A program made the translations under genes and the position numbers. This document shows, piece by piece, positions 9,942 to 61,395 of a stretch of 64,000 bases of DNA. This DNA is from Girardia tigrina (taxonomy: Eukaryota): contig MQRK01183776.1 in assembly GCA_001938485.1 (NCBI GenBank), positions 13,592 through 77,591 of the forward strand, in the 5' to 3' direction. The notes beneath the pieces are model-generated. The model did not search any database and was not told where the DNA came from. It saw only the letters and a program-made list of their open reading frames with translations. The stretch's first letter is position 1. Every line of letters begins with the position of its first letter.

Positions 9942-11119
9942 GTTCCTCAATGAAAACATTTATTCAAGTTTACAACATTATTGTACAAATACTCGGTAAG
10001 TAATTATCATTGTCTTAATTGTGTCGATTATTAATATCGATTTATTTTTAGTTTAAAAAAAAATATTATTATTGTATTAATAATTTTACCAACAAACACG
10101 CAGCATCAGCGTTGGTTTGCCACAGGAGAAATGATAAAAGTCGGCAGTCATAATCAGTCGAGGTTATAGTCATGCTAATGTGACACAATAAAACCATAAG
10201 AACATCTAGTCATTTACGTTAAATTTTTACATCAGTAATTAGCGTTTATCTTGAGATAATTTGAAGAAATTCGATTTAAGATTCCTGTAAATTTTTCTCT
10301 TTGTGTTCTTCTAGAGTTTCTTTTGAATCAGAAGTGATAGATTGTTCAGAGATTTCTTCTGAAGGAACAATAAAATTCATGTCAGGATATTCAACTGGAG
10401 TTCTTGGTGTCGTCTTGATCGGTTGACTTGCATTTGCACCCAGGTTACTCTCTAAAGGCACGTCATCGACTTCATTTACTGGCGTTTCTTCAGCTTCATC
10501 ATTATTCGCTTTTTTGGGTTATTTTCTTTACTTCATTTATCAACACTGCCAATTCGGATCGTGTAGTTTTAAAGGTTTCATTGAGTTCTTCATTTAACAC
10601 TTGTTGTCCATGCCCAAAATTTAATGACTTAATATAGGAATGTTCTTTATTATTTTGATACATGATTTCAGACATTTCTTGCTCTTTGGGTTCTTGAACA
10701 AAAAGTAGATGATCTTCATTTGATAGCATTCCTTTTCCGTTTGCTCCTTTATTTTGCGTCATAAATAATAGTTTAGCTAACCAATTATTTATCAGTTTTT
10801 TAATTATAAGATGAATCAGTTTAGAAAAATCATACCAAAAAAGAATCACAACATAAATCCATCATGCATCACATTCATCTCATGCAAGAAAATTTATGTA
10901 CAAAAAATAAAAAACAGCTAATGAAACCAAGACTTTGTACAAGAACACAAGCAAAACCACGTCCAAATCAAAGATAATTCAGAGAGAAGACTGGTGAGAG
11001 AAGTACCCACTACAGGGATTATTCAAATTGGTTTGTGTTTCTTTTCTTATGATGAACGTTTTGTAAAAATTTTAGTTTGAAATTAATTGTTTAATGGGTT
11101 TTTTAAAATAAGATTAATG

Positions 11120-11769
11120 CGCAAACATGTACCTTTTCTTTTTAATGATGAATGGTACATTCAGGAAGACGGTGTCGCAATGGGTTCCCCATTAGCACCA
11201 ACTTTGGCATCAATATTTATGAAGTCGCTTGAGGATAAAATGAATGNATACCCTGGTGAAAAACCTGTGTTGTACAAGAGATATGTGGATGATGTCTTTT
11301 TGATTTTCAGAAATCAATCCCTCATAGAACCATTCCTAACATTCATGAATGGTCTTCATCCGAATATTAAATTTACTACAGAATTGGAAGTAGATAATAA
11401 ACTTCTCTTTCTGGACATTCTTGTCACTAGGATGAATGGAGGCTATAAAACTGAATTATTCAGAAAGGCAACAGATAAAGGTCTTTACACAACACCACAG
11501 AGTTTTTGTGAGGAAAAATACAGAGAGGGTATGATCAAAGGGCTTGTTCATAGAGTTTGGAGTTTGTCGTCCAGTTTTGAAATTGCAAAGCAGGGTTTAA
11601 ATATTCATAGAAGGCGCTTAAAGGACAATATGTATACAAACAAGCAAATGGAACACAACATTAAGGTAACATTAGACAAATTATGTACAGATGCACGAGT
11701 TAAAAAACAATTAAAACAAGAAAATACTGAAGAATACAAACAAATCATTAAAATTCCATATTCTGAAGG
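11120..11769 (+). mobile_element. Penelope-like reverse transcriptase, open frame up to the assembly gap
   Basis: [20 protein letters not shown]...LYKRYVDDVF...HPNIKFTTE...FLDI...FRKAT. Confidence 0.92.
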
Positions 11770-14689
11770 NNNNNNNNNNNNNNNNNNNNNNNNNNNNNNN
11801 NNNNNNNNNNNNNNNNNNNNNNNNNNNNNNNNNNNNNNNNNNNNNNNNNNNNNNNNNNNNNNNNNNNNNNNNNNNNNNNNNNNNNNNNNNNNNNNNNNNN
11901 NNNNNNNNNNNNNNNNNNNNNNNNNNNNNNNNNNNNNNNNNNNNNNNNNNNNNNNNNNNNNNNNNNNNNNNNNNNNNNNNNNNNNNNNNNNNNNNNNNNN
12001 NNNNNNNNNNNNNNNNNNNNNNNNNNNNNNNNNNNNNNNNNNNNNNNNNNNNNNNNNNNNNNNNNNNNNNNNNNNNNNNNNNNNNNNNNNNNNNNNNNNN
12101 NNNNNNNNNNNNNNNNNNNNNNNNNNNNNNNNNNNNNNNNNNNNNNNNNNNNNNNNNNNNNNNNNNNNNNNNNNNNNNNNNNNNNNNNNNNNNNNNNNNN
12201 NNNNNNNNNNNNNNNNNNNNNNNNNNNNNNNNNNNNNNNNNNNNNNNNNNNNNNNNNNNNNNNNNNNNNNNNNNNNNNNNNNNNNNNNNNNNNNNNNNNN
12301 NNNNNNNNNNNNNNNNNNNNNNNNNNNNNNNNNNNNNNNNNNNNNNNNNNNNNNNNNNNNNNNNNNNNNNNNNNNNNNNNNNNNNNNNNNNNNNNNNNNN
12401 NNNNNNNNNNNNNNNNNNNNNNNNNNNNNNNNNNNNNNNNNNNNNNNNNNNNNNNNNNNNNNNNNNNNNNNNNNNNNTATATATATATATATATGTTAAT
12501 ATATGTAAAGTTTAATATATGCGTAATCTTAAGATATATAATTTAATATAAGCGACAGCCGATCTCCAGCGCCAAAACACGGCTTACTTCCCAGACCACG
12601 ACCAACGAAAAAACAATTCGCCAGACCTCCCGCATAGCCGCCGAACGAGGAATCGATCGGAGATACTCTCGGTCGATCATCCGAAAGCAATTGCTGACGA
12701 TTCACATTTAAGTCAAAACACTATCTGCTACTAAAATTTGTAGATAAAAATTATGCATCTCCATTATGGATCTTCCTTATGGACATCAAGATTTTGTGGC
12801 TTCATAGGAACCTGCAAAACCTCATTTTTTTGACCGCTGTACCATCACCCTCATCGAATTTTTATTCAACATTTTCACTTGACAAACGTTTGTTGAAAAT
12901 ATCTTAGGGCTGAGTAAATTTTTCTTGTACAACCCTCAAAACAATATTCACCAAAACATTTTATTTATATCATCTATATGATTTTAAATAAAATCCTTAA
13001 TCTATCTTTAATTCAAATCAAAAGACAAAGTTTATTTTAGAAAGATAATATTTTATATCGATTTACAACAAGTAAAATTTTTACAAATTGATTAGAAAAT
13101 ATATATGTATCCCCTTACTTATGCCCAGTTACGTTAAAGGTCTGGTTCTCATCCAGAGCCTTTAGTATTTTAGGTACGGTTTTATCCCAATTATAAATAA
13201 ATATAGAAATAAAATTAATTACGAATAACGTTTGAAATTATCAATATAAATAAAGATTAACAATTTTAAACGTTTATAAATTATAGTAACCTCAATACTG
13301 TTATGTCACTCGAAACAATTCATTCTTCTTCACCAATAGATAAAAATTCTCTTCAACTAATAATTATCCTATCCCTTCGATAAATCAAATAATAATAAAT
13401 AATCTCTCCTTCCTCAGCCTTGACGAATTGAATCAATAATTAATGACATCTTCGTACAAAAACTTCTTTAGGTTAATTAGACAATAAGTAACGTTGCCTA
13501 CGTGTAAAATTTCTCTTCATCCTTCGGTTAATTTGAGCAATAATAATTTTCGTCTGGCAAAAATCTCGACCATCTAAATGATTTTAAAATTTTCTCCAAT
13601 TTCTATTTTACTTACCTAATGATTTTAAATTTTTCTCACTAATACTATATTAGTGTTTTCTTTTATACTTTATTGATTTCTTGTAGGCTGTACCTACGTT
13701 TTCTATTTTTTTGCTCGATTTGCATTTTTCTTGTTGGTCTAGATTTGGCCTTTGAATTTAAAATTTAAATTATTTCTTGTCTTTTTTTCTTTTTTTTTCT
13801 TGTCTTTTCCTTCTTATTTTTTAAATAATAATATTACCTTTTTAATGTAAATAATAATATTATATTAATAATTATCACGCACTAAAGTAAATAATAATCC
13901 ATATTATTTACTAAAAATAAAAAATAAACTTATTTTCACAAAATATATTAAAATAAACAAAAAATTAAAACAAATATTTACATATTCAATAACATATCCA
14001 AACACTTTGATTTACGAATGAAATTTACTAATGACATTTCAGCAGTTTCCTTTTCTCTAAACCTCATTTATATTTTTATTCTTTAATATTGTTTAAAAAT
14101 TTATTAAATTTATAAAAGATTCCATACAATTAAAAAAATATTTAAGATTTCATATTACAACCATGAACAAGTTTGAATAAAGTAAAATTTCAATAAAGTG
14201 ATAGAATATGATGATTAAAATTAGGATAAAATTTAGGATAATAATTTAAACGAAATCAATTAAGGAGTTGGAAAAATAAAAATGTATTTAATGAAAATTT
14301 GTTTGAAAATGTATATTTGTTTTATTAATACATTTTTGTGTTAAATATGAATGTGAGGAATAATTTGGAATGTTGTAAGTTTGTTGTTTGTATGCTGTTT
14401 AGATTTGTGACTCTCCTACTCAGATGGGATTGATATGTTTATTGATTGATTATTTGAATCTAATGAAATTAATTTAATGACATTAATTTTAAGTACTAAT
14501 TAATTGAAGTTTTATAATTGTGAATTTTAATAATGTTTTTAGTAAACGATTTTAACTTATTAAATTTAATATATTTTAAAAATTAATGTTTATTTAAAAA
14601 AATACACAATGCCTTTTTATCCAATAATATTAAAATTATAAGAAATTAAAAGTAAATATTAAAAAATTTCCCATTCATTGTTTTTTTAG

Positions 14690-15038
14690 AATAAAAATTT
14701 TGACTTTATAGCATTTGGTTGCCCTAGTTATTAGTAATAACATATTGAACATTATCTGTTAGTAGCATTTTTGTTATTGCCATTTCTGACATTTCAGAAT
14801 CCGAATTAATTATTAGCAACATCACAATCAAAGAAAGATGCTCTCTGAGAATTGTTGTGAAGAATCTGTTTGTGATGTCAATAAATGTTTACATTCAAAT
14901 TGTGATGTTGCTAATAATTAATTCGGATTCTGAAATGTCAGTTAACGGCAATAACATAAATGCTACTAACAGATAATGTTCAATATGTTATTACTAATAA
15001 CTAGGGCAACCAAATGCTATAAAGTCAAAATTTTTATT
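14690..15038. repeat. Long inverted repeat (~139-bp arms, ~70-bp spacer)
   Basis: 14690-14828 is the near-exact reverse complement of 14899-15038. Confidence 0.9.
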
Positions 15039-15879
15039 TTCAACAAATATCGCTCGAGAAACAGTTTTGACGAGGTTTTTTTAAGACTACCTTCTGCAGC
15101 TTTTTTAGTCTTATAAAGTCAAAATTCTGCCCTATAAGTAAAAAAGTCAAAATTTTCAAAATATCAAATTAATAATATATTACTTTTCAATTTTTAATAA
15201 CTAATTATAAATTTAAATGTAAATTTTAATATTTTAAATAAATATTTTTTGTTTAAATATTATTTAATTTAATTTTTATTTTTTCAATATTAGAGATTCT
15301 TGGAACATCGTCAGAATTATTACTCTGAGTTATTTCAGGCTTCAAAACTTTTATTATGCAACACACAAAAAATGTTTAAATCTGATATTTAAACAAACTT
15401 ATTATTTTTTTGAGAAACAATTTGTTTTATAAATCTTACACCAGTATAAATAAAAATACTTATAAATATTCATATTTGATTTGATTTTATTACTTTTATA
15501 AATTAATTTTTAAAATCATTCCACATATAAAAATTATACATTTTAATTTTTATATTATAATTGAAACTCAATTTTTTTTAATTATTAACAATTTAATTAG
15601 ATCTTCATAATTTTAGTAATTTACTGTTTCAAACGTTATACATTTATTTATATATAAATTTTAATTTGTACATATTTCATTTAACCTTCTTTCAAAAATT
15701 TTCCTAGCATTTTTAATTTCTTACATTCAATATTGTGGCAAAAACGTAATAGTTACTGATATACTAAGTATTTTTAAATTTTTATTCTCATTTTCACCAT
15801 ACATAATTTTAATTTTTAATTTAATTTAGTGACAAAAGCTGAAAATGGTTTTAAAGAAAAGGTAAAAGCTGCTGTTTTG

Positions 15880-17527: not shown

Positions 17528-19205
17528 GGTACGACTATTATACTGCCCCCACATATTATGTAATCTGTGTAGATTTATATATTCTTCAAGATTAATTATT
17601 TATTTAATTACTTTATTTAATAAATTAATAATAATTAATTAAATTTATTTTAAGTAATTAATTGATTTAATTCATTGAATAAATAAATTTAAATTAAATA
17701 AATTTTAATTAATTATTTATTTTTTTATTAATTTAATTTAATAATTAATTTTTTCTTTAAGATTAATTATTTATTTAATTACTTTATTTAATAAATTAAT
17801 AATAATTATTTTATTTGAAGTAATTAATTAATTTAATTCNNNNNNNNNNNNNNNNNNNNNNNNNNNNNNNNNNNNNNNNNNNNNNNNNNNNNNNNNNNNN
17901 NNNNNNNNNNNNNNNNNNNNNNNNNNNNNNNNNNNNNNNNNNNNNNNNNNNNNNNNNNNNNNNNNNNNNNNNNNNNNNNNNNNNNNNNNNNNNNNNNNNN
18001 NNNNNNNNNNNNNNNNNNNNNNNNNNNNNNNNNNNNNNNNNNNNNNNNNNNNNNNNNNNNNNNNNNNNNNNNNNNNNNNNNNNNNNNNNNNNNNNNNNNN
18101 NNNNNNNNNNNNNNNNNNNNNNNNNNNNNNNNNNNNNNNNNNNNNNNNNNNNNNNNNNNNNNNNNNNNNNNNNNNNNNNNNNNNNNNNNNNNNNNNNNNN
18201 NNNNNNNNNNNNNNNNNNNNNNNNNNNNNNNNNNNNNNNNNNNNNNNNNNNNNNNNNNNNNNNNNNNNNNNNNNNNNNNNNNNNNNNNNNNNNNNNNNNN
18301 NNNNNNNNNNNNNNNNNNNNNNNNNNNNNNNNNNNNNNNNNNNNNNNNNNNNNNNNNNNNNNNNNNNNNNNNNNNNNNNNNNNNNNNNNNNNNNNNNNNN
18401 NNNNNNNNNNNNNNNNNNNNNNNNNNNNNNNNNNNNNNNNNNNNNNNNNNNNNNNNNNNNNNNNNNNNNNNNNNNNNNNNAATTAATTTATTCTTTAAGA
18501 TTAATTATTTATTTAATTACTTTATTTAATAAATTAATAATAATTATTTAAATTTATTTGAAGTAATTAATTAATTTAATTCATTGATTAAATAAATTTT
18601 AATTAATTAATTATTTTAATTAATTATTTATTTTTTTTATTAATTTAATTTAATAATTAATTTATTATTTCAGATTAATTATTTATTTAATTACATTATT
18701 TAATAAATTAATAATAATTAATTTAATTTATTTTAATTAATTAATTTAATTTTTTGAATAAATAAATTTTAATTAATTTAATTCATTGAATAAATAAATT
18801 TGAATTAATTAATTATTNNNNNNNNNNNNNNNNNNNNNNNNNNNNNNNNNNNNNNNNNNNNNNNNNNNNNNNNNNNNNNNNNNNNNNNNNNNNNNNNNNN
18901 NNNNNNNNNNNNNNNNNNNNNNNNNNNNNNNNNNNNNNNNNNNNNNATGAATAAAAAGTAAATTAAGTAAAGAATAAATTAATTATTGAATGAATAAATT
19001 ATTTAATTTATTATTTATTTTATTCAATAAATTAGTAAATTTGATTTGATTTAATTTCAATCAATTAATAATTAATTATTTCATTTTTTATTAATTAATT
19101 AACAATTTTATTCATCCATTCCACCAGTTATTCCACTAATTCGAAACGAAATTATATAATCTATATAGATTACATAATATATGGGGGCAGTATAACATTC
19201 GTTCC
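17528..19205. mobile_element. Merlin-like non-autonomous DNA transposon filled with AT-rich tandem repeat (SelO intron 1)
   Basis: ~50-bp imperfect TIRs starting GG (GGTACGACTATTATACTGCCCCCA.. / ..TGGGGGCAGTATAACATTCGTTCC); 8-bp TSD ATCATTAA at 17520-17527 and 19206-19213. Confidence 0.75.
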
Positions 19206-23940: not shown

Positions 23941-24228
23941 ACAGGCACAATCTCAAGGGTTTCAAAAAATATGAATTGACGAATTTCACAAAAAATGAAC
24001 AAAAACAACTGATTGTGAAATTTTATCTGGCTCAACCATTCAGAGCGAATCATTTCATTCATTTGCTCACAAACTCGGCAACTGAACAACAATCGGCAAA
24101 AATGAATTAACAACACTGACTCGATAAGTCATCGTTAATTAATCCATTGTTCTTTAAATGAACAAAGATCGAAATTAATTTTTTAAATTTTCTTTACCAA
24201 TTTAATTTTAGATTTTCATTTATACATC

Positions 24229-25716
24229 TGTAGCAACAACACAATGAACAGCGCGCAAGTTATATTTGAAATTAAAATCCGAATCGGCAAACAACCGATT
24301 TAAACAAATACATCACACGCCCCCCTGCCTTCAAGGCATATTCACTGCATCAGCAAGGAGGCAAGCCAACTTAATTTGCGGTCCTTAGACCGCACCCCGA
24401 GTCCCCGAGTTCGGTCTGTTCCCGAATTTCAACTCGGCTCCCGCGGTAGCCAAAAAATTGTATAGTGACAGCCTCGTGACCTCCGGCATTGCAGTCTCAC
24501 TCGCAGCTGTTTCTTCGCTCGCTTCAGCAGTGCGCTCCCCTGCACCACAACCAGATTGGTTGCCTCGCCTGGCTCCTGCTGCTCGTCTGCCAGTACCATC
24601 AGTTACATTGCAGGGTGTTCCCCGTCGCACAGCACGGTCGTTGTGTCCAACATGATGACCGACTTGCCGATATGATTAACTAGGTTCTTCTTCATCACGT
24701 GCAGCTCGAATCGCGCAGCTCCTCCTAGGTCATCCCTTGTCTCCTTGATCGTCCGGTTGAGCTTGTCCCTCAGCTGCCGCAATTAGCTCATCAGAAGACA
24801 GCCTCTAATGTTGCCGCCAGCCGGTTCTGCCCGAGCATTTCTTGTCAAATTCTCTCGTCCACTCAGTTTTCAACATCTTCCTGCCCGCGTATTCAACTAA
24901 TAGGCTTGAATATGAGTCCGTAAATGATCGTCAGTTCTCGATGCCGTCTCAAATCCCCTCGATCGCCCGCGCGTCCCGCAATCAGCTTTTCAATCGCCCG
25001 CGCCTCTCTTGATCTGCTTCTCGATCACCCGCCTTCTTTTGATCTGCTTCTCGATCGCCCGCACCTCTCACGATCCGCTTCTCGATTGCCTCGCCGTTTT
25101 TTCCTAACGACGACTTGATGCACACGACCCAATCGTGCAGCTGCGCATTTTCGATTTTATCCGTGTCCGCCTCGTCCACGAACACGAGCCTCCGGTCACT
25201 ATCTACTATCCCGAGCGCTTTCACTGCGCACAACAGCTGCCCAAATCCCAGCCGGCCGAGAATTCTGCTATCGAACTCCATCTTCTCGACCACCTCGAGC
25301 CTCATGCGGAGTGTTCAATTGTCCCCGACCCGAAATCGTGATGTCCCTCTGATCCATATTTGACGAAATTGTCGATATCGTCGCGATCTGTATTGGGTGC
25401 CACCACCGGTCTTGACATCGGCCACCAGACTTCCAACCGCTATGATCACTTCCCGCCGGAAAGCAATCGGATTGGTGAATCTGCCGATCTTGTAGAATTT
25501 TCGTCTTTCGACAGCACATCAATCGGTCCCTGAAAGCTGAAATTGCCGCCCCTCCGCATCGTCATTGGCTTTGATATCACTTTCTTGGCGCTGCTCACTG
25601 TCAACATTGGTTGTTGCCGCGATAGCTTGTAGCAACAACACAATGAACAGCGCGCAAGTTATATTTGAAATTAAAATCCAAATCGGCAAACAACCGATTT
25701 AAACAAATACATCACA
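24229..25716 (-). mobile_element. Small non-autonomous LTR element (TRIM-like), 1488 bp, 89-bp LTRs
   Basis: LTRs 24229-24317 and 25628-25716 (TG..CA, one mismatch); 5-bp TSD ACATC; PPT GGCAGGGGGGCG next to the 3' LTR; GC-rich interior without RT. Confidence 0.93.
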
Positions 25717-28700
25717 ACATCTTTATATAAATATTTCAGTGATTGTCATTCGACAAAATATAACAGGAAAAAATGCCCATTTGAATCGTCTTTGGGCAAG
25801 AAGAGAGGAGAATTTATAAATAAATATAACAATAAATAATTTATAATTTCAATTTCGAAACAATTATTATTAAAGTGTCTCAAATGTATCTATTTTGTTC
25901 ATTGGTGTAAATGTACATTTTTATTTTTTTATGTATGTGTTATTAATTTCTTTGTGTAACATTTCTCTGTCACCAGTGACAATCACCATAACAACCAAAA
26001 AATGCGAATCTGATACATCACTCGAAAAAAGTATAAAGTCGAATGATGTAGATCGAAGTAAACAAAAATTTTAAGTAAGCTGGAGCTAAAAACGAACATC
26101 TAGCATCTGCTATTCCAAATAATATTGGAGATGAATCTGTTCGCACACTTCATGATTACGTCAATGGTAATAGCTCCAAAGATTGTAGTAAGACTGTGAA
26201 GCCAGAAAGAAAAACGAAAGCCTTTAATGGAAGCAAGAAATAAGATTTATAAATATTACAACATGGATTTAAAAAAAATCGATAAATCAGAATTAATATA
26301 AATTTCGCGATTAGTTATCGCTAACAAAATCTGGTCAAGCGTAAACAAAAAAAACAACAATCCTCCCAACGACAATCGGTGCATCAACCTTGACAACCTC
26401 AGATAATCAACCGATCAATTCAATGTATATCTTCGTTTTGGACAATACTCCCCATCATCCCTAGTTTGGTGAATAATTATATTGTTTACGAAATCGTAAT
26501 AATCATTACGACTTACATTTTTTTAACAATATAGTTATTTTGTACGTTGGTTTGTTTTTTTTGGTATTTTTAGATTGCTAAGCTCATTTAACTTACTTGT
26601 TAGATTAGCTTAGTAATTCTTCCCTGTATAGATTGATTCATAGTCACTATCGTTCATCTGATAGGTGAGTCATTCTATAATTGGTATTAAATCATAAACA
26701 TTGTAAGACAATGTTGAGTTGGGGCATTGTACCGTTGCTGCCAACTGTTCTGGACGTCGATCCCTGCATCGAGGCAGGAGAAAACTTGGTTGTTATTATA
26801 CTCATATTTAAGAAAAACAATGTAAAAACTCGAATATCCGTTTTATTTCGGTTGTCAACCATTTATCTTTACAGCACATTTAAATTTTTTTGAGTAGATT
26901 TTTTGTGTTAATTAGTTCACTTAAACAATTTTCTTTATTTTGACATTAAACTTTTTGCTTGTTCATTGTTTTCGGTTCACTTTTCTTTTTTCTTATACTT
27001 TCATTTTTTTTAATTAACAACAAGGTTTCATTGGTAATGAAAATTATTATTTATTAATTTAGAAATTTGCAAAAGTGAAAAAAATATATTAATATCAAAA
27101 TTTGTTAATTTTGGTTTTACTTTTGTGAATTAATTTTTTTGAGAAATATTTAACAAGTTCATTATGTGCTATTCGGTGGTCACTACATACAAGAACTAAG
27201 ATTGTTTTTGCAAAAAGTGAAAGCCATCTGCTTCTACACATTTCTCTTTCCGTTAAGACAGCTGTTTAATTTCATCAAAATACCAATCATAGGATCTACA
27301 GTCCAACAATTGATGAAACCATATCTTGAAATATTTCTGTACTTTAAAAAATCTTGCAGAAAAAGTGGCCTTCAGTCTAAATGGATAGTGATCTGAACAT
27401 GATAGGTTTTGGTTAGTAGAAATATAATCGCTCGTGTAATTAAAATTATTATATATTCCGAATATTCATCGTATCCCATAAAAAGTATACAACAAGACAT
27501 TTTTACGAATCATATAGATTTATAAATGTTAGAAATCTATAGAAAATTCTGGGTTAAACATGTATTAAAATTTATTTTTTATATAAAAAAAATTTAATCA
27601 TTTTATTAGAGTTTGTCATTATGAGTAATAATTTTTAATATGTAATTACCATCCTCCACAATATCAAGGACCGGTCACTTAATAATCTAGATATTGAAGG
27701 GGCTTCCTTACACTTATTGCTCATTTCGTGGAATTGGCTTCTATCTCATGAGCTGATATCATCCCTTTCAGAATTTCTGTCTGCAATGCAATCATTGGAA
27801 TCTATTTATAATCGTTTTTGATTGTTGGATCACTCAAAGGCTGGATAATATCTCTTTCATATTTATTTATATAATGAGTTTTTTATACTCATATCAACAT
27901 TTATATTTACCAAATTTATATTTACATGTACTCATGTTTATATTAAATGTGGACCAGTCCAAGCTGAAAGATCATACTCATGAACATATTAAATGTAAAT
28001 ATATTATACAAATCGTATATTAAATAAAAATGTATTATATATTTTATATAAATCATATATTAAATGAAAATTTAAAAATTTTATAATAATGATGAAATAA
28101 GTAATCGCGTAGCGATCAAATTAATATTTGAATTACAATTAAAAATAAAAATAAAAACTAATATTAACGAGATTCCGATCTGCAATAATTATTATCGTTC
28201 CACATAGAAATAATTACCAAAACAAAATATTCACACAAGATTATTTATCATCAACATTTCCAAGGACTACTATTTATCCAATAACGGAAAAAATAAGTTA
28301 ACCTAAGTTGTAATTATTATCAATTCAATGTAAAAACAGAAAGCACATGAATTAATTTTTTTATGAAGCTAATTAAAAGATCCAAATCACTCTCAAGAGT
28401 TTACTAGTTATCTTACAATCACGAAATCAAGTAATTCAAACTCTCATTCCTTTTCCTATGATTCAATATTTCGACTTTCTTTTTTTCTATCTGTTGTCTC
28501 GTTTAGAATAGTTTTAATAATAAACTTCATATTAGTTATATATTTTCTTATTTTTACAACATAAGTGAGTCTATTGAGTCAGTTACCGAATTCGTCGGCT
28601 CCTTTAATAAAATTGTCTTTTGACCATCATTTATCCATTAATTACTTATCCCATTAACTAAATAATTTGCTTATCCAATTATCCCTTCTCTAAACCATCA

Positions 28701-41500: not shown

Positions 41501-43730
41501 ACGTAATTTATGATCAAACCTAAATCGCTAAACATTTAAACGTCTTAACAAACGTAAGCGTTTAAACGCTAAATGTGTCCACCTCTAATAAATAATTATT
41601 TAAAACGGTATATATTTTTAAACAACATTTAATTATTTGAATTTTTAATAATAATATTCAAATAACTAAAACAATTAAATAACTTAGCTTCATTCAAATA
41701 ACCCAGCTAAATTTTAATATTTTCTTCAAATAATTAAGAGTTTAAATAACTCAACTTTAAAATAACTAAAAAATTACTTTATGGGAGTTGCGGGTCTGTG
41801 CGATGAAACCCTGAGAATACTTTGTCAAGATAATTGTTTTACCGTTAGTGGGTGGCGTTTTGACAAGGGTATCGGGGCCGCCACCTGGCCCAAGGTGATC
41901 GGAAACCAATGGAGTCCCCTGGAATGACTTTGTTACTCCTTGACCGTTGATTCTGGTGATCTTATCGAAATTAACAACAATAATTCGTTTGGAATTATGT
42001 TTCGATTTAGATTTAATCGATGGAGTTTCGCAAGCGGGCGTCAAAAATCGACCTGATCAAATCAACGATACTTTGACATTGTCGAACAATTCTTTCCGGG
42101 AAAAATCGGATGAGTTTTCTTTGATAAAACGATAATAATTGAAAAACACGGACACAAAATGGTTGTCAATCATTGTATATTTATCAATTCAATTTATTTA
42201 CAAAAAATAAGTGATTCAGTAAAACAAATGGTGTAAAAAACTGAATATTTTTATTTCTTTTTTTCTAAAATAATTAATTATAAATAAATATATAATGTTT
42301 TTATGAGATACAGAAATAATCTTATATATATTTGAATAAGTTGATTTTGGGGGTCACTATAACTACTGTATATTTTTTTAAAGGTGTTAGATTTTGAATT
42401 ATTGCCGATGCCACCTTTGGACGCACCAGGGCGCATAGGATCGCGTCACACGTGATGATCGTCATGCGCGAGATTAGTATCAAACACACTTTCGTTAGTC
42501 TAGACTTGACCACCTCGCAGCGACTCAACAATCCTCGGTAATTTTATATCAGGGTACCTATTCGTCGGAAAACAGTACTCCTCGAAAACCGATTTAGCAA
42601 ATTGAAAATAATTTTTGAGAATCGTGTTAATGTCATGATTGTTCCGGTCAACGTCTCAAGTCACTCGTCTCGATAGGCGCCAGTTCGCATCACAATGCAC
42701 AAAAATTTATACAAGCACCACGCTCATATCGGCTATTATTTCTCGCACATTTGCAGTCAATCTCACAAACGTTCGATGATCATCATCGTGAATTATCGTC
42801 TTTCCTTGTTGCAAAATCATGACGAAAACATTGTCCAACTCAACAAATTCGAATATATCGGGATATTCGAAGTTGTATTTCCCATCGATCACGGCCGAGA
42901 GAATCAAAAGACCAAATATTTTGGTGTAGTATTTTCACTCGACAGTCGATCCGTATTTACGCATATTTTTTAATGACAAATACATTTATATACAATTATT
43001 CAAATAGGCCGTTAACTTCGTTCAAATTTTTATTTTTTAATCACAGTTTTTTTCTAGATACACAGAACATCGCTTTATTTGAAACATTTAAACAAACTGT
43101 AGGTCATCACAATTCCATTTTTCACTATATAAATATATTAAGAAATTTTAATTTTAACATTTTCAATTTATAAATATATATATACATATAATTTAATTCT
43201 ATGATTTTTAATCGACAATTAAAATCGAATCAGGAATAAAGGATAATTGAATTTTTTAAATGCATTTTTTAATGAAATGCATTTTAAGAGTCTAAATCAA
43301 ATTTTAAAAATAATAATTGCGATAGTGTGCTCGATATCCAATGTCAAAAATATTAATATTAAATATTCTTCCGCACAGTAGGCATTTCATAGAGATGGAA
43401 GATGCTCAGGGATCCGCAGACGAAACCGGATAGAGATACAGGAAGAAGAAATACCAATGGACTTCATACTACACATGGATGAACCCGACAGTATGGAGGA
43501 GCCCCAAATCGATGCAGTAGTGGAGAACTTCGATCCGGTAGTCCTCGACAAGGTACTCAACTCGAGACGTAAACAGAGTTGAGCAACTTGAAAAAGAGAA
43601 CAATTACTTCTCCTCTGATGATGAATCGTTAGAATATGAAGTATAAAATATAAGGTATAGGACACATAGATAGGAGGAAACGATCACCCAAACCAATGGT
43701 GCCGAGGAGTCCACATGAAAAGAAACCCAG

Positions 43731-44733
43731 TGTAGTGACCTACTCTTTTATATAGGATATAATTCCTATAATAAAATTAAATTGATTTTGTTAATTGATG
43801 GATTAAGTTGTAATAACAGTTTATTTTGAATAAATATTTATTATTATTCTCTGGAATTTTTACAAAAAGTGGGGATATCCAAAGAAGAAAAATCCTTCAC
43901 AATTAACAAAATCAATTTATTTTATTATATAAAATAGTAGGATAGGCAGTTGTACAATTCTGTAGTAAAAAAGTAATAAATAAAATTTGTATCTAAAAAA
44001 AATCAATGAATAAATCAAGAAATTAATTAACATTACAATAACTAATTACCGAATTACCGACGACTTATAATGGGAATTTTTGTTCGGTTTCGCGGTTGTG
44101 ATTAATGTACGGTTTATTTTTTTAAGAGTTGTTAAAAATTTTGTTTTTTTGATCAACTTAGTTTTTTTGTCATACGATAATTATTTCTAATTGTAAAAGC
44201 TGCGAATAAACTAATTTAATTTATTCACTATTAAATTCTTTGCTTTTACAAAGTGGTGTCAGAAGTAGGATTATTTAGTTAACAAGTCAAAAGACAAATC
44301 GGAAAAACTACAAGAAGCAAATAGATAGGCAGTGTATAACGCAGGATTAAAAGATATCGAATTTTGGTTGGGTGAAGTTGAGCATTCGTTGTCTAGTCCT
44401 GATTATGGCAAAGATTCTGCTTCTGTTGACAGTTTACTGTCTAAGCATCTAGTATTAGGAACTGACATTCACGCTCACGAAGACCGTATAAGAGATCTGA
44501 ATGAAAGAGCTGATGAATTTATTGAATCTGGTACATCCCACTTCTGACACCAATTGTGAAGGATTTTTCTTCTTTGGATATCCCCACTTTTTGTAAAAGT
44601 TCCAGAGAATAATAATAAATATTTATTCAAAATAAACTGTTATTACAACTTAACTGTTAAATCCATCAATTAACAAAATCAATTTAATTTTATTATAGGA
44701 ATTATATCCTATATAAAAGAGTAGGTCACTACA
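43731..44733. mobile_element. Chimeric LTR-derived integrant with inverted LTRs carrying an alpha-spectrin fragment
   Basis: 43731-43901 is the reverse complement of 44555-44733 (8-bp indel); TG..CA ends; 5-bp TSD CCCAG; two inward PBS-Leu copies. Confidence 0.9.
44260..44533 (+). pseudogene. Alpha-spectrin repeat fragment
   Basis: DYLVNKSKDKSEKLQEANR*AVYNAGLKDIEFWLGEVEHSLSSPDYGKDSASVDSLLSKHLVLGTDIHAHEDRIRDLNERADEFIESG resembles SPTAN1 [76 protein letters not shown]; TAG at 44326-44328. Confidence 0.92.
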
Positions 44734-45232
44734 CCCAGTAAAAACCATGGCACAGCTAACCAGCCTTACGGATTTATATAGGACAGACCAAGTAATTTTT
44801 CCCACAGAAAAAAAATTCCAGTAAACATTAGAATGAAGTTACTGAAGGAACCGATAAAACTTGTGACCACAATTCAATCTTTTTATTTATATTAATATTC
44901 CTCATCCTATTCGGTCGTTTGATAAATCTCCACTTGATTTTGATTATTTGATATTCGGAAGAATTCCAATATAACGAATTCGATATTGTTGATGCATTTT
45001 CCATTTTGCAAGATTTTTGACAGATATTTCCAATTTATGATAATTGTTCTTCCTTCAGGTTCGATCGAACAATGTCCTTAAAATGTATTTTGAAATGGAG
45101 GAGTTTTGATTTTAATAAAAAACGTTCTTTCTTTTTGAAACTATTCTTTAAATTTCTTTTTATTTTATTTATTTTAAATATTTCCAATATAAACCAGAAA
45201 ATGAATTTCAATTCTTTACAAATTAATTACAG

Positions 45233-45921: not shown

Positions 45922-46667
45922 CAGGCATACCTCGATTAACGCTACCCCTTTTAGCGCTGTTTCGTTATAGCGCTCTTTTGATTTTATGAAAAAAAAATAA
46001 TTTTAACTTCAAAATATTTGAAGGTGAACGACAGTCCGAAGTGTCTTCCAGCCTAGGGTTGGCTGGATCAACTATTAGAACCATTCTTAAAAATTCCGAT
46101 AACATTAAGAAATCCATTTGTATAACAACTTCATTATCTGCCAAGAAAGTAACACGCACAAGAAATACTCAAAAATGTTTGGAACATAATCTAGGGATAA
46201 TCCAAAATGCCTTAGAAGATTTAAGTGAAAATGATCCCAATTTTGAAAGGTCCTGCGCTATAAAACGAGGAGTAATGAACCCTTTATCACCCTACATGGA
46301 AATTTTAAAAGAAAAAAGAAAACTGTTTAAGCAAACAAGCTTACCCACATTTTTTTAAAAAAATAGTTAAATATGAATTTACGCCTTTATTTTGTGATAT
46401 GTATTAATATATTTTTTGTTTTTATTGAAATTGATTTGTTATATTGAATTCTAATTTATTTTCTAATTTTTAAATGAAGTATAAATGAAATAAAAATTTT
46501 ATTTCAAAATAAAATACCATCTTTTTTATTTTTCACTTCAAAGTACCAAAAAAATTGGTTAGGAACGTAACCCCATATTTTAGTGTAAATAGCACCTCTT
46601 TTGACGCTGTTTCTGTAAACGCTCAATTTTCAGGAACGCAATATGAGCGCTAAACGAGGTATGCCTG
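45922..46667 (+). mobile_element. Internally deleted Tigger element, 746 bp
   Basis: TIRs CAGGCATACCTCG.TTA / TAAACGAGGTATGCCTG. The ORF joins the N-terminal HTH (GLAGSTIRTILKN) to the C-terminal DPNFERS...KQTSLPTFF with no DDE domain. Confidence 0.9.
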
Positions 46668-49322: not shown

Positions 49323-49568
49323 GAAATACATATTCCGGCACATTTAAAAAATAAGAGTTAATAAAATATTTCGATTATATTACTCTTCAACATTCATTAA
49401 ATAAGTGATACTTTAGAAATGAAAATTGTACTGAAACATATTTTATATTATATTATATGTCAGTACAATTTTCCTTAATAAAGTATCATTAATTTAATGA
49501 TTATTGAGGAGTAATATATTCGAAATATTTTATTAAGTCATATTTTGATGTTTCGGAATATGTATTTC
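49323..49568. repeat. Imperfect ~245-bp palindrome (MITE-like)
   Basis: GAAATACATATTCCG...GAAAATTGTACTGA mirrored by TCAGTACAATTTTC...CGGAATATGTATTTC. Confidence 0.75.
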
Positions 49569-53400: not shown

Positions 53401-53650
53401 GTAGTGACCACAATTTATTACATATCCATCGTAAAATTTTTCCTACACTAATAAAATTTTATCGTTGATTAAATTTATAAATAAAACTAAAACTAAAATC
53501 AAAATTATCAAATTTCAAATTTAATTAATTTTATCAATTGTAATTTTTTTAATTACCACTAATAAGTAAAATTTTATCGGTGTTAAAATTTATAAAAAAT
53601 CAAAACCTGGTAACTAAATAAAAAAAATAAAGTTAATGAAAATATCATTT

Positions 53651-53701
53651 AAAAATATATTTTAAGATAATATATTTCGACGGTTTAACCGTCATCATCA
53701 G
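53651..53701 (-). ncRNA. Minimal hammerhead ribozyme in the inverted Penelope repeat
   Basis: Minus strand reads CTGATGA-T-GACGG-TTAAA-CCGTC-GAAA-TATATT..AATATA-TT. Confidence 0.75.
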
Positions 53702-55567
53702 ATCACTGATTATGTTCTTTATTATTACTTTTATATAAGAAATGAATGATTATGTAATCACTTACGTAAGTCTAATCAAAAACTCTTAAGAAATTAGTTG
53801 AGAGTGCTGTTTGAACATTGATTTTTGGATCACATGATCTTATGAATAATGCTTCACATGACTCTCTCTCCCAATAATTTTTAAAATGCTTGCACAAAAT
53901 TTTAAAATCATTTATGTTCACATTACATTTACACGTTTTTTTATGCTCAGCAATATTACTCTTTCCCCTATTTGATGGATGGACAATTTACGAAGACATT
54001 TTACGATGGACATTACAAAGGATATTTTTGACTGACTTCATGTGTCTGGTTCTCAACCAGTAAAATTATACGGCCTTCCTAAAATACATAAAGATGGAGT
54101 TCCAATGCGACCGGTTCTATCTATGATCCGTACGTCTCAGTACAATATTGCTAAATATCTAGATACGAAGATAAAGTCTTTCATTCCTAATGATTTTATT
54201 TGTAAGGACAGTTTTGAGTTTGTGAATTCCAGTGCTTATTTTGAAATACGAACTGAAAATGATTTTATGGTTTCCTTTGATGTATCGAGTCTATTTACTA
54301 ATGTTCCGTTACAGGAAACCATCGAATTATGATGTGAACTTTGGTGTAAGAATAATCTGGACAATTCTGATTTAGATGAAGTTGCTTTTCGAAAACTCTT
54401 AACATTTGCTACTTCAAATGTCCATTTTCTATTTAATGGTGAATGGTATAAACAAATAGATGGGGTTGCAATGGGTTCACCATTGGCTCCAACGTTAGCC
54501 TCTATATTTCTTTCTTCCATTGAAGAAAAAATAGAATTGTTTTTGGGGAAAAAGCCACTACTTTATAAGAGATATGTGGATGATATCTTTCTAGTCTTTG
54601 AATCTCGAGAACATGTGTTTCCTTTTCTAGATGACATGAATTCGATTCATCCAAATATAATCTTTACAGTAGAACAGGAAATAAATGGAAAATTACCATT
54701 CCTTGATTTGTTAATTGAAAGGAAAAATGATCATTATGAAACTGAAATATATCGAAAGAAAACTGATATTGGTTTTTACACCTCCATAAACAGTTTTTGT
54801 GAGTTTAAATATAAAAGGAATATGATCAAAGGTTTGTTATACCACTCTTAGTCTCTTTCTTCTACGTTTTCAAAATCTATTAAAAGTATTGATACATTGA
54901 GCAAGTTATTGAATAATAGCGGTTACTCTAAGTCCATCTTAGACAGACTCATTCGTGAGACTGTAGATAAAATAATCGAAAAAGAAAAATCAAAAATGAA
55001 CAAATTAATAGTTTAAACATTGAAAACTGCTTTACACCTGGGTATACTCTAAGTTTACCTTACTCCGAGGGTTTTAAACATCTCAAGAATTCGATCTTGA
55101 AATCAACAAATAACATTTTAAATTTAAAAATTATTTTTCAATCATTTAAAGTTGAGAATATGTTTTGCAATAAATCACATACTCCTTTGCGATTGTATTC
55201 GGACATTGTTTATCAATACACATGTTATGGGTGCAATGCCACATACATCGGAGAGACTGCCCGTCATCTCTTCAAACGAGTCCAAGAACACAGTCAAAAA
55301 GGAGGAAAGAGTAATATTGCTGAGCATAAAAAAACGTGTAAATGTAATGTGAACATAAATGATTTTAAAATTTTGTGCAAGCATTTTAAAAAGTATTGGG
55401 AGAGAGTGTCATGTGAAGCATTGTTCATAAGATCATGTGATCTAAAAATCAATGTTCAAACAGCACTCTCAACTAATTTCTTAAGAGTTTTTGATTAGAC
55501 TTACGTAAGTGATTACATAATCATTCATTTCTTATATAAAAGCAATAAAAAGAACATAATCAGTGAT

Positions 55568-55616
55568 CTGATGATGACGGTTAAACTGTCGAAATATATT
55601 ATCCTAAAATATATTT
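55568..55616 (+). ncRNA. Minimal hammerhead ribozyme at the Penelope 3' end
   Basis: CTGATGA-T-GACGG/CTGTC-GAAA-TATATT/AATATA-TT. Confidence 0.75.
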
Positions 55617-56099
55617 TTTAAAGGCGTTTATTTCTTTATAATAAAAAATTGCTATCTTTTTTCAAGTTTATTAATGAAAATATGTTGTTTAAATATGTAT
55701 GATTTAAAATAAAATTTTCTTATCGGCTTGAAAACGTGATATTTTCCCTGCCTTTTTTTTATCGATTATTCTTTGCGGTAAATTCTATAATCGTATAGAA
55801 ACCGTAAAAAAAGATAAGAAAAAATTCAACTGACGGCGAAACACCTGGGGGACGATTGGCAACGAAAATCGCTCGTAAATTCCCCCCATCGCCCGATGGC
55901 GTCAAAACGCCGAATCGACGTCGTTCTGAAACTCTATGGCAAGATGGCGACCCCCATAGCATCCCAATGCCATCCGACACCGGTAATTTATCGTTATTGT
56001 CGAACCGTTTCTCCGGAGTCAAATTCAAGGGTCACTGGTTGGTGATTGGACCCGTTGAGTTCCCATCGAGACGGCGCAATGTCCCCTTTACACAAAAAA

Positions 56100-60181: not shown

Positions 60182-61395
60182 TTGGGTTGGCCTAAAAATC
60201 ATTGCGTTTTTAAGTACGTCCTAATAAACAGCTTGACAATATAAAACTATGTGATAAAATTTAAATTCAATTATATATTCTAAAACCTCAATTTTCAGAC
60301 TATGTTTATACAAAATATTAATTGCTTTTGTTTTAATTGATTACTTTACCGTCAATTCGAAATGGAAAATCAAAATGAGCATATTCGTCATGTTTTGTTG
60401 CATTATTTTCGCAAAGGGAAAACCGCTGTGCAAGCTCATAAGAAGATATGTTTTGTATNNNNNNNNNNNNNNNNNNNNNNNNNNNNNNNNNNNNNNNNNN
60501 NNNNNNNNNNNNNNNNNNNNNNNNNNNNNNNNNNNNNNNNNNNNNNNNNNNNNNNNNNNNNNNNNNNNNNNNNNNNNNNNNNNNNNNNNNNNNNNNNNNN
60601 NNNNNNNNNNNNNNNNNNNNNNNNNNNNNNNNNNNNNNNNNNNNNNNNNNNNNNNNNNNNNNNNNNNNNNNNNNNNNNNNNNNNNNNNNNNGGTTACCAC
60701 ATGAACTGAAAGAAATTCATTTGGTGAAACGTATAGACATTTACGATTCCCTTTTGAAGCGAGAACAAAGTGATCCATTTTTGAAGCGCTTGATTACGGG
60801 TGACGAAAAAATGATTGTTTACACCAATGTGAAACGCCGACGATCATGGTCAAAACGTGGTGAGCCTGTCAAAACGACCCCAAAAAGCAGAAATTCACCA
60901 AAAGAAGGTTATGCTTTCCGTCTGGTGGGAATTTAAAGGAATTGTGTTTTTTGAACTCCTTCCGAGGAATGAAACCATCAATTCAGACAGATATTGTGAT
61001 CAGCTGGAGAAATCGGCTCATTCAATTCAACAGGAACGTCCTGAATTGATAAATCGAAAAGGAGTTGTAATTCAGCGTGTAATTCAGGTTTTGCCGCACC
61101 CACCGTATTCTCCAGACTTGGTCCCATCGGATTTTCACCTATTTAGATCACTGCAGAATTCCTTAAACAGAAAAACATTCGCCAGTGATGATGACATCAA
61201 ATCGTTCTTAGACGGCTTTTTTGCTGACAAGGGCAAAGGTTTTTATGAATCAGGAATAATGAAGCGACCGGAAAGGTGGAAGAAAGTGATTGAAAATAAT
61301 GGACAGTATACCGTGTAAAATTATTTGTGCATCCATGTCATTTTTTGATAATAAATATTTTAGTAAAAAACGCAATGACTTTTTGGCCAACCCAA
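60182..61395 (+). mobile_element. mariner element, defective
   Basis: TIRs TTGGGTTGGCC.AAAA.TCATTGCGTTTTT with TA TSDs; LITGDEK, KKVMLSVWW, HPPYSPDLVPSDFHLF. Frameshift, and the HDNA (second Asp) segment is deleted. Confidence 0.95.

Follow-up and report, generated by a model that had tools for sequence, protein, structure and literature searches.

In animals, long terminal repeat (LTR) retrotransposons can generate chimeric insertions by LTR-mediated retroposition, a process that yields partial copies of host mRNAs, leaves a median microsimilarity of 6 bp at the fusion points and occasionally adds short de novo inserts, with yeast Ty1 and retroviral transduction cited as earlier related work (PMC5131818). 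Here, we analyze a cassette of a different make-up in a 64,000-nucleotide stretch of the genome of Girardia tigrina (assembly GCA_001938485.1, contig MQRK01183776.1, positions 13,592 to 77,591 of the forward strand; hereafter the window). It is an insertion of about 1 kb in AT-rich animal DNA, in which a fragment of an alpha-spectrin gene lies between two inward-facing units, each composed of an LTR and a primer-binding site (PBS), and in which the outer LTRs are inverted. We consider it somewhat more likely than not, at roughly 0.55, that this cassette arose as a dead end of reverse transcription by LTR retrotransposons and was nonetheless integrated.

The cassette shares with the products of LTR-mediated retroposition a partial host fragment flanked by LTR-element sequence, the union of several templates in one product, microsimilarities of 5-7 nt at its junctions and an occasional short untemplated insert. 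However, the previously described chimeras result from switches in the coding region of the element during minus-strand synthesis and keep direct LTRs (PMC5131818), whereas the cassette points to switches at the tip of the PBS, contains no internal element sequence and has inverted LTRs from two or three families. Each unit on its own resembles the canonical 5' LTR and PBS (PMC6894440), with a repeat bounded by TG...CA, a tRNA complement of 18 nt that follows after 2-3 nt, and a target duplication of 5 bp. Unlike a canonical LTR retrotransposon, the cassette has neither a direct partner LTR nor a polypurine tract or gag/pol, and its two units face each other.

Inverted repeats at both ends are also typical of several other groups of mobile elements. 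Ginger transposons carry terminal inverted repeats (TIRs) of 40-270 bp with TGTNR termini, generate 4-bp duplications (5 bp in TDD-4/5) and include an aphid among their animal hosts; their TIRs have been speculated to stem from two oppositely oriented LTRs (PMC2836005). The arms of the cassette, with 174 and 182 nt, fall within this range and have TGTAG termini. In contrast to animal Ginger elements, which duplicate 4 bp at CCGG/CCGT or AT-rich targets, the cassette is flanked by a 5-bp duplication, CCCAG, and whereas Ginger encodes an integrase-like transposase, the cassette is devoid of coding capacity and has a tRNA PBS inside its arm boundary. DIRS retrotransposons use a tyrosine recombinase and are not known to produce a target duplication or to have a tRNA PBS; the cassette differs from them by its 5-bp duplication, its tRNA PBS and the absence of a recombinase open reading frame (ORF). 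What it has in common with them are inverted long terminal repeats, as described for DIRS (PMC3950715, PMC7192593). Pack-MULE and Pack-TIR elements likewise hold a host gene fragment between terminal inverted repeats (PMC8277862), but these are the TIRs of DNA transposons and the capture occurs at the DNA level, whereas the repeats of the cassette are LTRs with primer sites and its junctions point to reverse transcription. We found no literature precedent for an integrated inverted pair of LTR and PBS units with a target-site duplication, although the coverage of our search was limited and absence is not proven by it. The inverted-LTR topology is rare and known so far from one locus.

Parts and junctions of the cassette

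The outer ends of the cassette are two identical unique-3' (U3) termini bounded by a 5-bp direct repeat, an arrangement consistent with a single integrase event. The length of this repeat falls within the 4-6 bp of target-site duplications made by LTR retrotransposons. Its motif, CCCAG, occurs in the window at 2.5e-4 per position, and the probability that two random 5-mers match by chance is 2.6e-3. Since the flanks form a direct rather than an inverted repeat and are unique within the window, an inverted duplication or a palindromic read artefact can be ruled out as the origin of the structure.

Both outer arms are copies of one repeat, LTR-A, which begins with TGTAGTG right against CCCAG and ends in ...CACA. 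The left arm (43731-43904, plus strand) comprises 174 nt and the right arm (44552-44733, minus strand) 182 nt; they differ by one substitution and one 8-nt indel and are thus ~99% identical. In the left copy, the LTR proper stops at 43901 (...CACA); the arm then continues with AT and the initial T of a PBS. TATA-like and AATAAA motifs are found inside LTR-A. The inner left repeat, LTR-B, runs from TGTAGT to ...TACA, and 3 nt separate it from the left PBS copy. Both repeats are bounded by TG...CA, and their similarity is confined to the six initial bases, the terminal ...ACA and the PBS. Judged by their sequences, LTR-A and LTR-B are two families with a single primer, which implies the involvement of at least two families.

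Between the left LTR-A and LTR-B lies a short inverted segment, A', which matches the beginning of LTR-A. It is identical to LTR-A at 30 of the 31 positions of its first stretch, but then shows a gap of ~13-15 nt and more substitutions, and its terminus is longer than that of LTR-A and different from it. This segment had been taken for a short fold-back of LTR-A. However, A' diverges from LTR-A, with its indels, substitutions and other terminus, far more than the ~99% identical arms do from each other, so that a self-primed fold-back is ruled out as the origin of 43900-43956. Its sequence instead marks A' as a third, related LTR variant. A' and the end of LTR-A have 5 nt (CAATT) in common. As the T that closes this overlap is at the same time the initial PBS base, the left LTR-A must have been copied from a template that bore a PBS as well.

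Each LTR unit carries an 18-nt copy of the primer tRNA-Leu(CAA), of which the outer left arm has only the first base. The two 18-mers differ by one base, and a search of the window at up to three mismatches returned only these two sites, compared to 0 expected from 100 shuffles. The 18-mer is the complement of the 3'-terminal 18 nt of tRNA-Leu(CAA), including CCA, as printed for mammalian tRNAs in a table (PMC10359600) and as the start of a capture probe (PMC7997516). It follows LTR-A after 2 nt and LTR-B after 3 nt, within the 0-5 nt expected for an LTR retrotransposon. The window contains no tRNA genes and no Rfam matches at gathering level.

The cargo is a colinear 263-bp piece of an alpha-spectrin gene that matches the Pfam family PF00435, the spectrin repeat (E=5.4e-14; score 53 bits, cut-off 29.9), and corresponds to about residues 1620-1690 of the ~2,420-residue spectrins among its relatives. 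Its closest relative, L001, is a 562-bp metagenome contig from ENA (ERZ2272577) that encodes the protein P0023; two further relatives, L002 and L003, come from Logan (SRR3143639 and SRR31175833, respectively). On the same contig of L003, an SH3 domain lies between spectrin repeats, which marks the protein as an alpha-spectrin. The cargo shares 91% amino-acid and 78% nucleotide identity with P0023/L001, relative to which it contains one in-frame stop and no frameshift. The codons that differ between the two comprise 48 synonymous and 6 non-synonymous changes, a pattern that identifies L001, on the basis of this comparison, as an orthologue that is functional and stems from a different species. 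Protein searches for the spectrin parent in G. tigrina itself gave only relatives with at most 91% amino-acid identity, and the parental gene was not found.

Four more distant relatives (L002, L003, P0152 and P0153) have an intron within the region corresponding to the cargo. L001, which looks like genomic DNA, has none there, even though intron-like sequence is present on both sides of the exon. In L002, two introns interrupt the sequence that forms a single exon in L001. Given that the intron positions of alpha-spectrin vary among relatives, the absence of an intron is by itself a weak sign of retro-origin.

The two junctions of the cargo fall exactly at the end of an 18-nt tRNA copy. The cargo aligns without gaps to positions 149-411 of the 459-nt coding stretch of L001, in which positions 143 and 413 are the only occurrences of TGGGA. 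The first cargo base immediately follows the TGGGA(Y) hexamer at 143, and a single nucleotide separates the last one from the site at 413. The PBS has TGGGAT as its 3' end, and the fusion points thus show microsimilarity, with both cargo boundaries lying at TGGGA(Y) sites of L001 that match the PBS tip. The joint chance that random boundaries meet both sites is ~6e-5. The left site consists of W-D codons that are kept in L001, L002 and L003, whereas the right site is found in L001 only, with the cargo itself retaining the preceding codons. Both TGGGA(Y) sites are located in the sense strand of L001, so that in either case it is the antisense strand with which the PBS tip pairs.

The positions of all parts are listed in Table 1. 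The coordinates given in an earlier inspection of the bare sequence, referred to below as the original prediction, are borne out to the base. It had likewise correctly recognized the 5-bp CCCAG duplication on both sides, the 18-nt PBS for tRNA-Leu(CAA), which agrees with the published tRNA ends (PMC10359600, PMC7997516), and, as verified by Pfam and by position, the spectrin cargo between two inward-facing LTR and PBS units.

Table 1. Features of the inverted-LTR cassette, in window coordinates.
Feature	Positions	Strand	Basis or remark
Left target-site duplication copy, CCCAG, 5 bp	43726-43730		direct repeat of 44734-44738
LTR-A, left copy	43731-43904	+	~99% identical to inverted right copy; TGTAGTG terminus
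A', initial ~57 nt of a diverged repeat related to LTR-A, inverted	43900-43956	-	sequence comparison with LTR-A
Filler ATTC, 4 nt, between the facing termini of A' and LTR-B	43957-43960		template not identified
LTR-B-like segment, 290 nt, TGTAGT...TACA	43961-44250	+	shares termini and downstream PBS with LTR-A
PBS copy after LTR-B, 18 nt, preceded by 3-nt spacer (44251-44253)	44254-44271	+	1 base off right PBS
Cargo, alpha-spectrin repeat fragment, 263 bp	44272-44534	+	Pfam PF00435
PBS copy of right LTR-A, 18 nt, followed outward by 2-nt spacer (44553-44554)	44535-44552	-	exact complement of tRNA-Leu(CAA) 3' end
LTR-A, right copy, inverted	44555-44733	-	~99% match to left copy
Right target-site duplication copy, CCCAG, 5 bp	44734-44738		direct repeat of 43726-43730

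The surrounding window is AT-rich, with a GC content of 0.18-0.45 per 2 kb, and includes 11 runs of N, none of which lies nearer to the cassette than position 46.8 kb. A search with blastn (word size 9) detected no empty site in a paralogue of the cassette flanks within the window. An ORF in the flank (43382-43579) has neither a homologue nor a Pfam match, and three ORFs spanning cassette junctions were absent, by exact look-up, from the collections queried. A 30-nt pattern covering the spectrin/PBS/LTR junction had no match among JGI metagenome contigs.

A proposed reverse-transcription route and its competitors

Among the intermediates of replication, only plus-strand strong-stop DNA stops, with a free 3' end, exactly after an 18-nt copy of the tRNA, and an LTR followed by a primer copy is the make-up of this intermediate. 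In regular replication, the second strand transfer depends on PBS homology (PMC6894440). The formation of the cassette could have started in a particle containing spectrin RNA or cDNA besides the strong-stop DNAs of two families with the same primer. The LTR-B and LTR-A strong-stop DNAs would both have docked on the antisense spectrin strand, each pairing through the terminal 5-6 nt of its PBS (TGGGAT) with one of only two complementary sites that the spectrin stretch offers. The LTR-B unit may then have been extended over 263 nt until it met the docked LTR-A and switched, with an overlap of 0-2 nt, to the free 3' end of the latter, after which the LTR-A unit would have been extended back along the new strand. 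Past the end of LTR-B, this strand would have acquired four untemplated bases and ~57 nt copied from the third, related LTR (A'), before switching via the 5-nt CAATT overlap onto a template composed of LTR-A and a PBS. The outcome would be a linear DNA with inverted copies of LTR-A at its two ends, and integrase could have used these two identical U3 ends for insertion, thereby generating the CCCAG duplication. Docking on the same antisense strand would also explain why the right boundary lies at a sense-strand TGGGAT whose reverse complement is present in the cassette.

Several points weigh against this proposal. The path requires four template switches, and both the order of events and the assumption of a single particle have been deduced from the final product. 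The cassette represents a single locus, whose contiguity is known from this one assembly, and blastn searches (word size 9) of the window yielded no further copy of LTR-A, A', LTR-B or the cargo; neither LTR-A nor LTR-B is linked to gag/pol in the window. The boundary argument draws on relatives with 74-78% nucleotide identity, with the right site being contributed by L001. The origin of the cargo from RNA is similarly debatable, as introns are present in the four distant relatives and missing in the closest one. Finally, the match of the 18-mer to the tRNA-Leu(CAA) of G. tigrina itself would follow from the conservation of tRNAs.

The original prediction also invoked strong-stop DNAs that jumped onto host mRNA or cDNA, and the core of this idea finds support, including the junctions at the PBS tip, the two U3 ends and the two families. 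What does not hold up is its placing of the two primers on opposite strands, as both boundaries lie at sense-strand TGGGA(Y) sites and hence fit docking on the same antisense strand. Nor is there support for its Gypsy label or for the intron loss that it expected. Stated as an alternative in its own right, two strong-stop DNAs would have been primed on opposite strands of a double-stranded or RNA/DNA copy of spectrin and the product then integrated. This scenario, which we regard as unlikely, leads to the same final topology for the core of LTR-B, cargo and LTR-A; the right junction allows a terminal match of 0-2 nt, and in L001 the PBS also matches the sense strand over 7 nt farther upstream. 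However, the 7-nt match is missing in L002, and the PBS tip pairs with the sense strand over no more than 2 nt at the right boundary, which instead adjoins a sense-strand TGGGAT that affords perfect pairing on the antisense strand. Moreover, opposite-strand priming accounts for LTR-B as the left end of the product and, as a full account, leaves the outer left LTR-A and A' unexplained.

In a further model, two incomplete cDNAs would each have contributed a U3 end to one concerted integration at CCCAG, and host end joining would then have connected their inner ends. The donors would have been an LTR-A unit with the A' piece on the one side and a chimera of LTR-A, PBS, spectrin, PBS and LTR-B on the other. 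The LTR termini that face each other across the 4-nt filler at 43957-43960 resemble an end-joining scar between two completed DNA ends, and the extra left LTR-A is obtained without a fourth template switch. Yet, a chromosome break would need to be held until repair, and the junction between LTR-A and A' still calls for a switch at 5 nt of microhomology. We regard this two-donor integration as unlikely.

It is also conceivable, albeit with a very low probability, that the cassette is a copy of a non-autonomous TIR family that moves as DNA by means of a retroelement- or Ginger-type integrase or transposase acting on the TGTAG ends, with the LTR-derived structure being older and having arisen elsewhere. 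Its arms of 174-182 nt, TGTAG termini and 5-bp duplication are indeed reminiscent of Ginger. However, the window contains neither a second copy nor an integrase-like ORF nearby, and the collections searched contain neither the ORFs of the cassette nor its junction pattern. In addition, the arms carry a tRNA PBS at the spacing of an LTR, so that mobility as DNA could at most be a later life of an LTR-derived structure. An origin of the arms as DNA-transposon TIRs can be ruled out, because two unrelated repeats share a tRNA-complementary 18-mer at LTR spacing.

There is only a slight chance that the structure arose by nested LTR insertions into an older spectrin pseudogene followed by deletions, with a coincidental CCCAG match, or that it is an assembly chimera: although the window is rich in transposon debris and N runs and contiguity rests on this assembly, the two deletions would both need to stop precisely at base 18 of a PBS and at the TGGGA sites (~6e-5), the 5-mers would have to match by chance (p ~2.5e-4 to 2.6e-3), and the two arms are resolved as distinct copies by their substitution and 8-nt indel, with unique flanks and no N nearby. 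An inversion through recombination between the LTRs of nested elements was ruled out on paper, because ordinary LTR recombination cannot set an inverted LTR against the right-hand duplication.

Regarded as a dead-end product of reverse transcription, the cassette most likely has no present function and constitutes a decayed, non-coding insertion with a stop in its cargo. The spectrin fragment is its only coding content, and it lacks gag/pol, direct LTRs and a polypurine tract, with no purine tract being detectable at the inner LTR edges; it can therefore not undergo an RNA cycle as such. Fold prediction suggests that an RNA copy of the cassette would form a hairpin with a stem of ~174 bp plus a PBS stem, and such a hairpin RNA, if transcribed, could feed small-RNA pathways.

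Other repeats in the window

The window also harbors a miniature LTR element of the direct kind (24224-25721 including its duplications). Its LTRs, at 24229-24317 and 25628-25716, have a length of 89 nt, are 99% identical and show TGTAGC...CACA termini, and the element they delimit (24229-25716) is flanked by the 5-bp duplication ACATC, indicating that integrases of this type have acted in this genome. The interior of 1.3 kb has a GC content of 0.54, compared to ~0.3 for the genome, gives no Pfam match and does not start with a TGG-type PBS after the LTR. Possibly, this element is likewise an LTR cassette with cargo, but of the usual type with direct LTRs.

A longer inverted repeat, with arms of ~335 nt (53643-53975 and 55295-55627) that are 96% identical, surrounds 1.3 kb of sequence with an RVT_1 reverse-transcriptase fragment (54471-54851). 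It may be a Penelope-like element or another retroelement with inverted terminal repeats. The possibility that it represents a second inverted-LTR cassette was ruled out, since it has no TG...CA ends or clear duplication. Two smaller inverted repeats are located at 14681-15047, with 104-nt arms (95% identity) separated by 159 nt, and at 49348-49546, where a near-palindrome has 98-nt arms (85% identity) only 3 nt apart.

Further transposon remnants include a fragment of a mariner-type transposase (60857-61318; PF01359, E=5.5e-23), a weak RVT_1 fragment beside an N run (11087-11245) and a weak CENP-B_N-like helix-turn-helix region (45990-46355). A repeat family of ~134 nt, in tandem or interspersed arrangement, occupies positions 17573-18817 and adjoins two N runs, in a stretch with a very low GC content.

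Implications for LTR-mediated gene capture

Errors in the transfer of plus-strand strong-stop DNA are known from cell-culture work on retroviruses and Ty elements. To our knowledge, integrated natural products in which every junction is intact are rare. If formed in the proposed manner, the cassette would indicate that the PBS tip can pick host sequence as a landing site, that strong-stop DNAs of different families sharing a primer tRNA can meet in one reaction and that a DNA with two U3 ends can still insert with a normal duplication.

The cassette also provides a concrete, checkable example for the view that the long TIRs of DNA transposons with integrase-related transposases could stem from LTRs (PMC2836005). 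It would be a bold step, and one for which we see only a faint chance, to regard the cassette as a natural snapshot of LTR-to-TIR conversion, in which errors of reverse transcription give rise to a two-U3 DNA that is accepted by a retroelement integrase. If true, it would represent the kind of intermediate through which Ginger-like cut-and-paste transposons have been proposed to descend from LTR retrotransposons, and which is not known to have been observed. Should further copies with duplications of their own exist, the cassette would be an LTR-derived element of the TIR type with host exons as cargo.

Collectively, the cassette would widen the known routes of LTR-mediated exon capture (PMC5131818), and it leads to the prediction that such captures begin and end where the host sequence shows a short match to the PBS tip.

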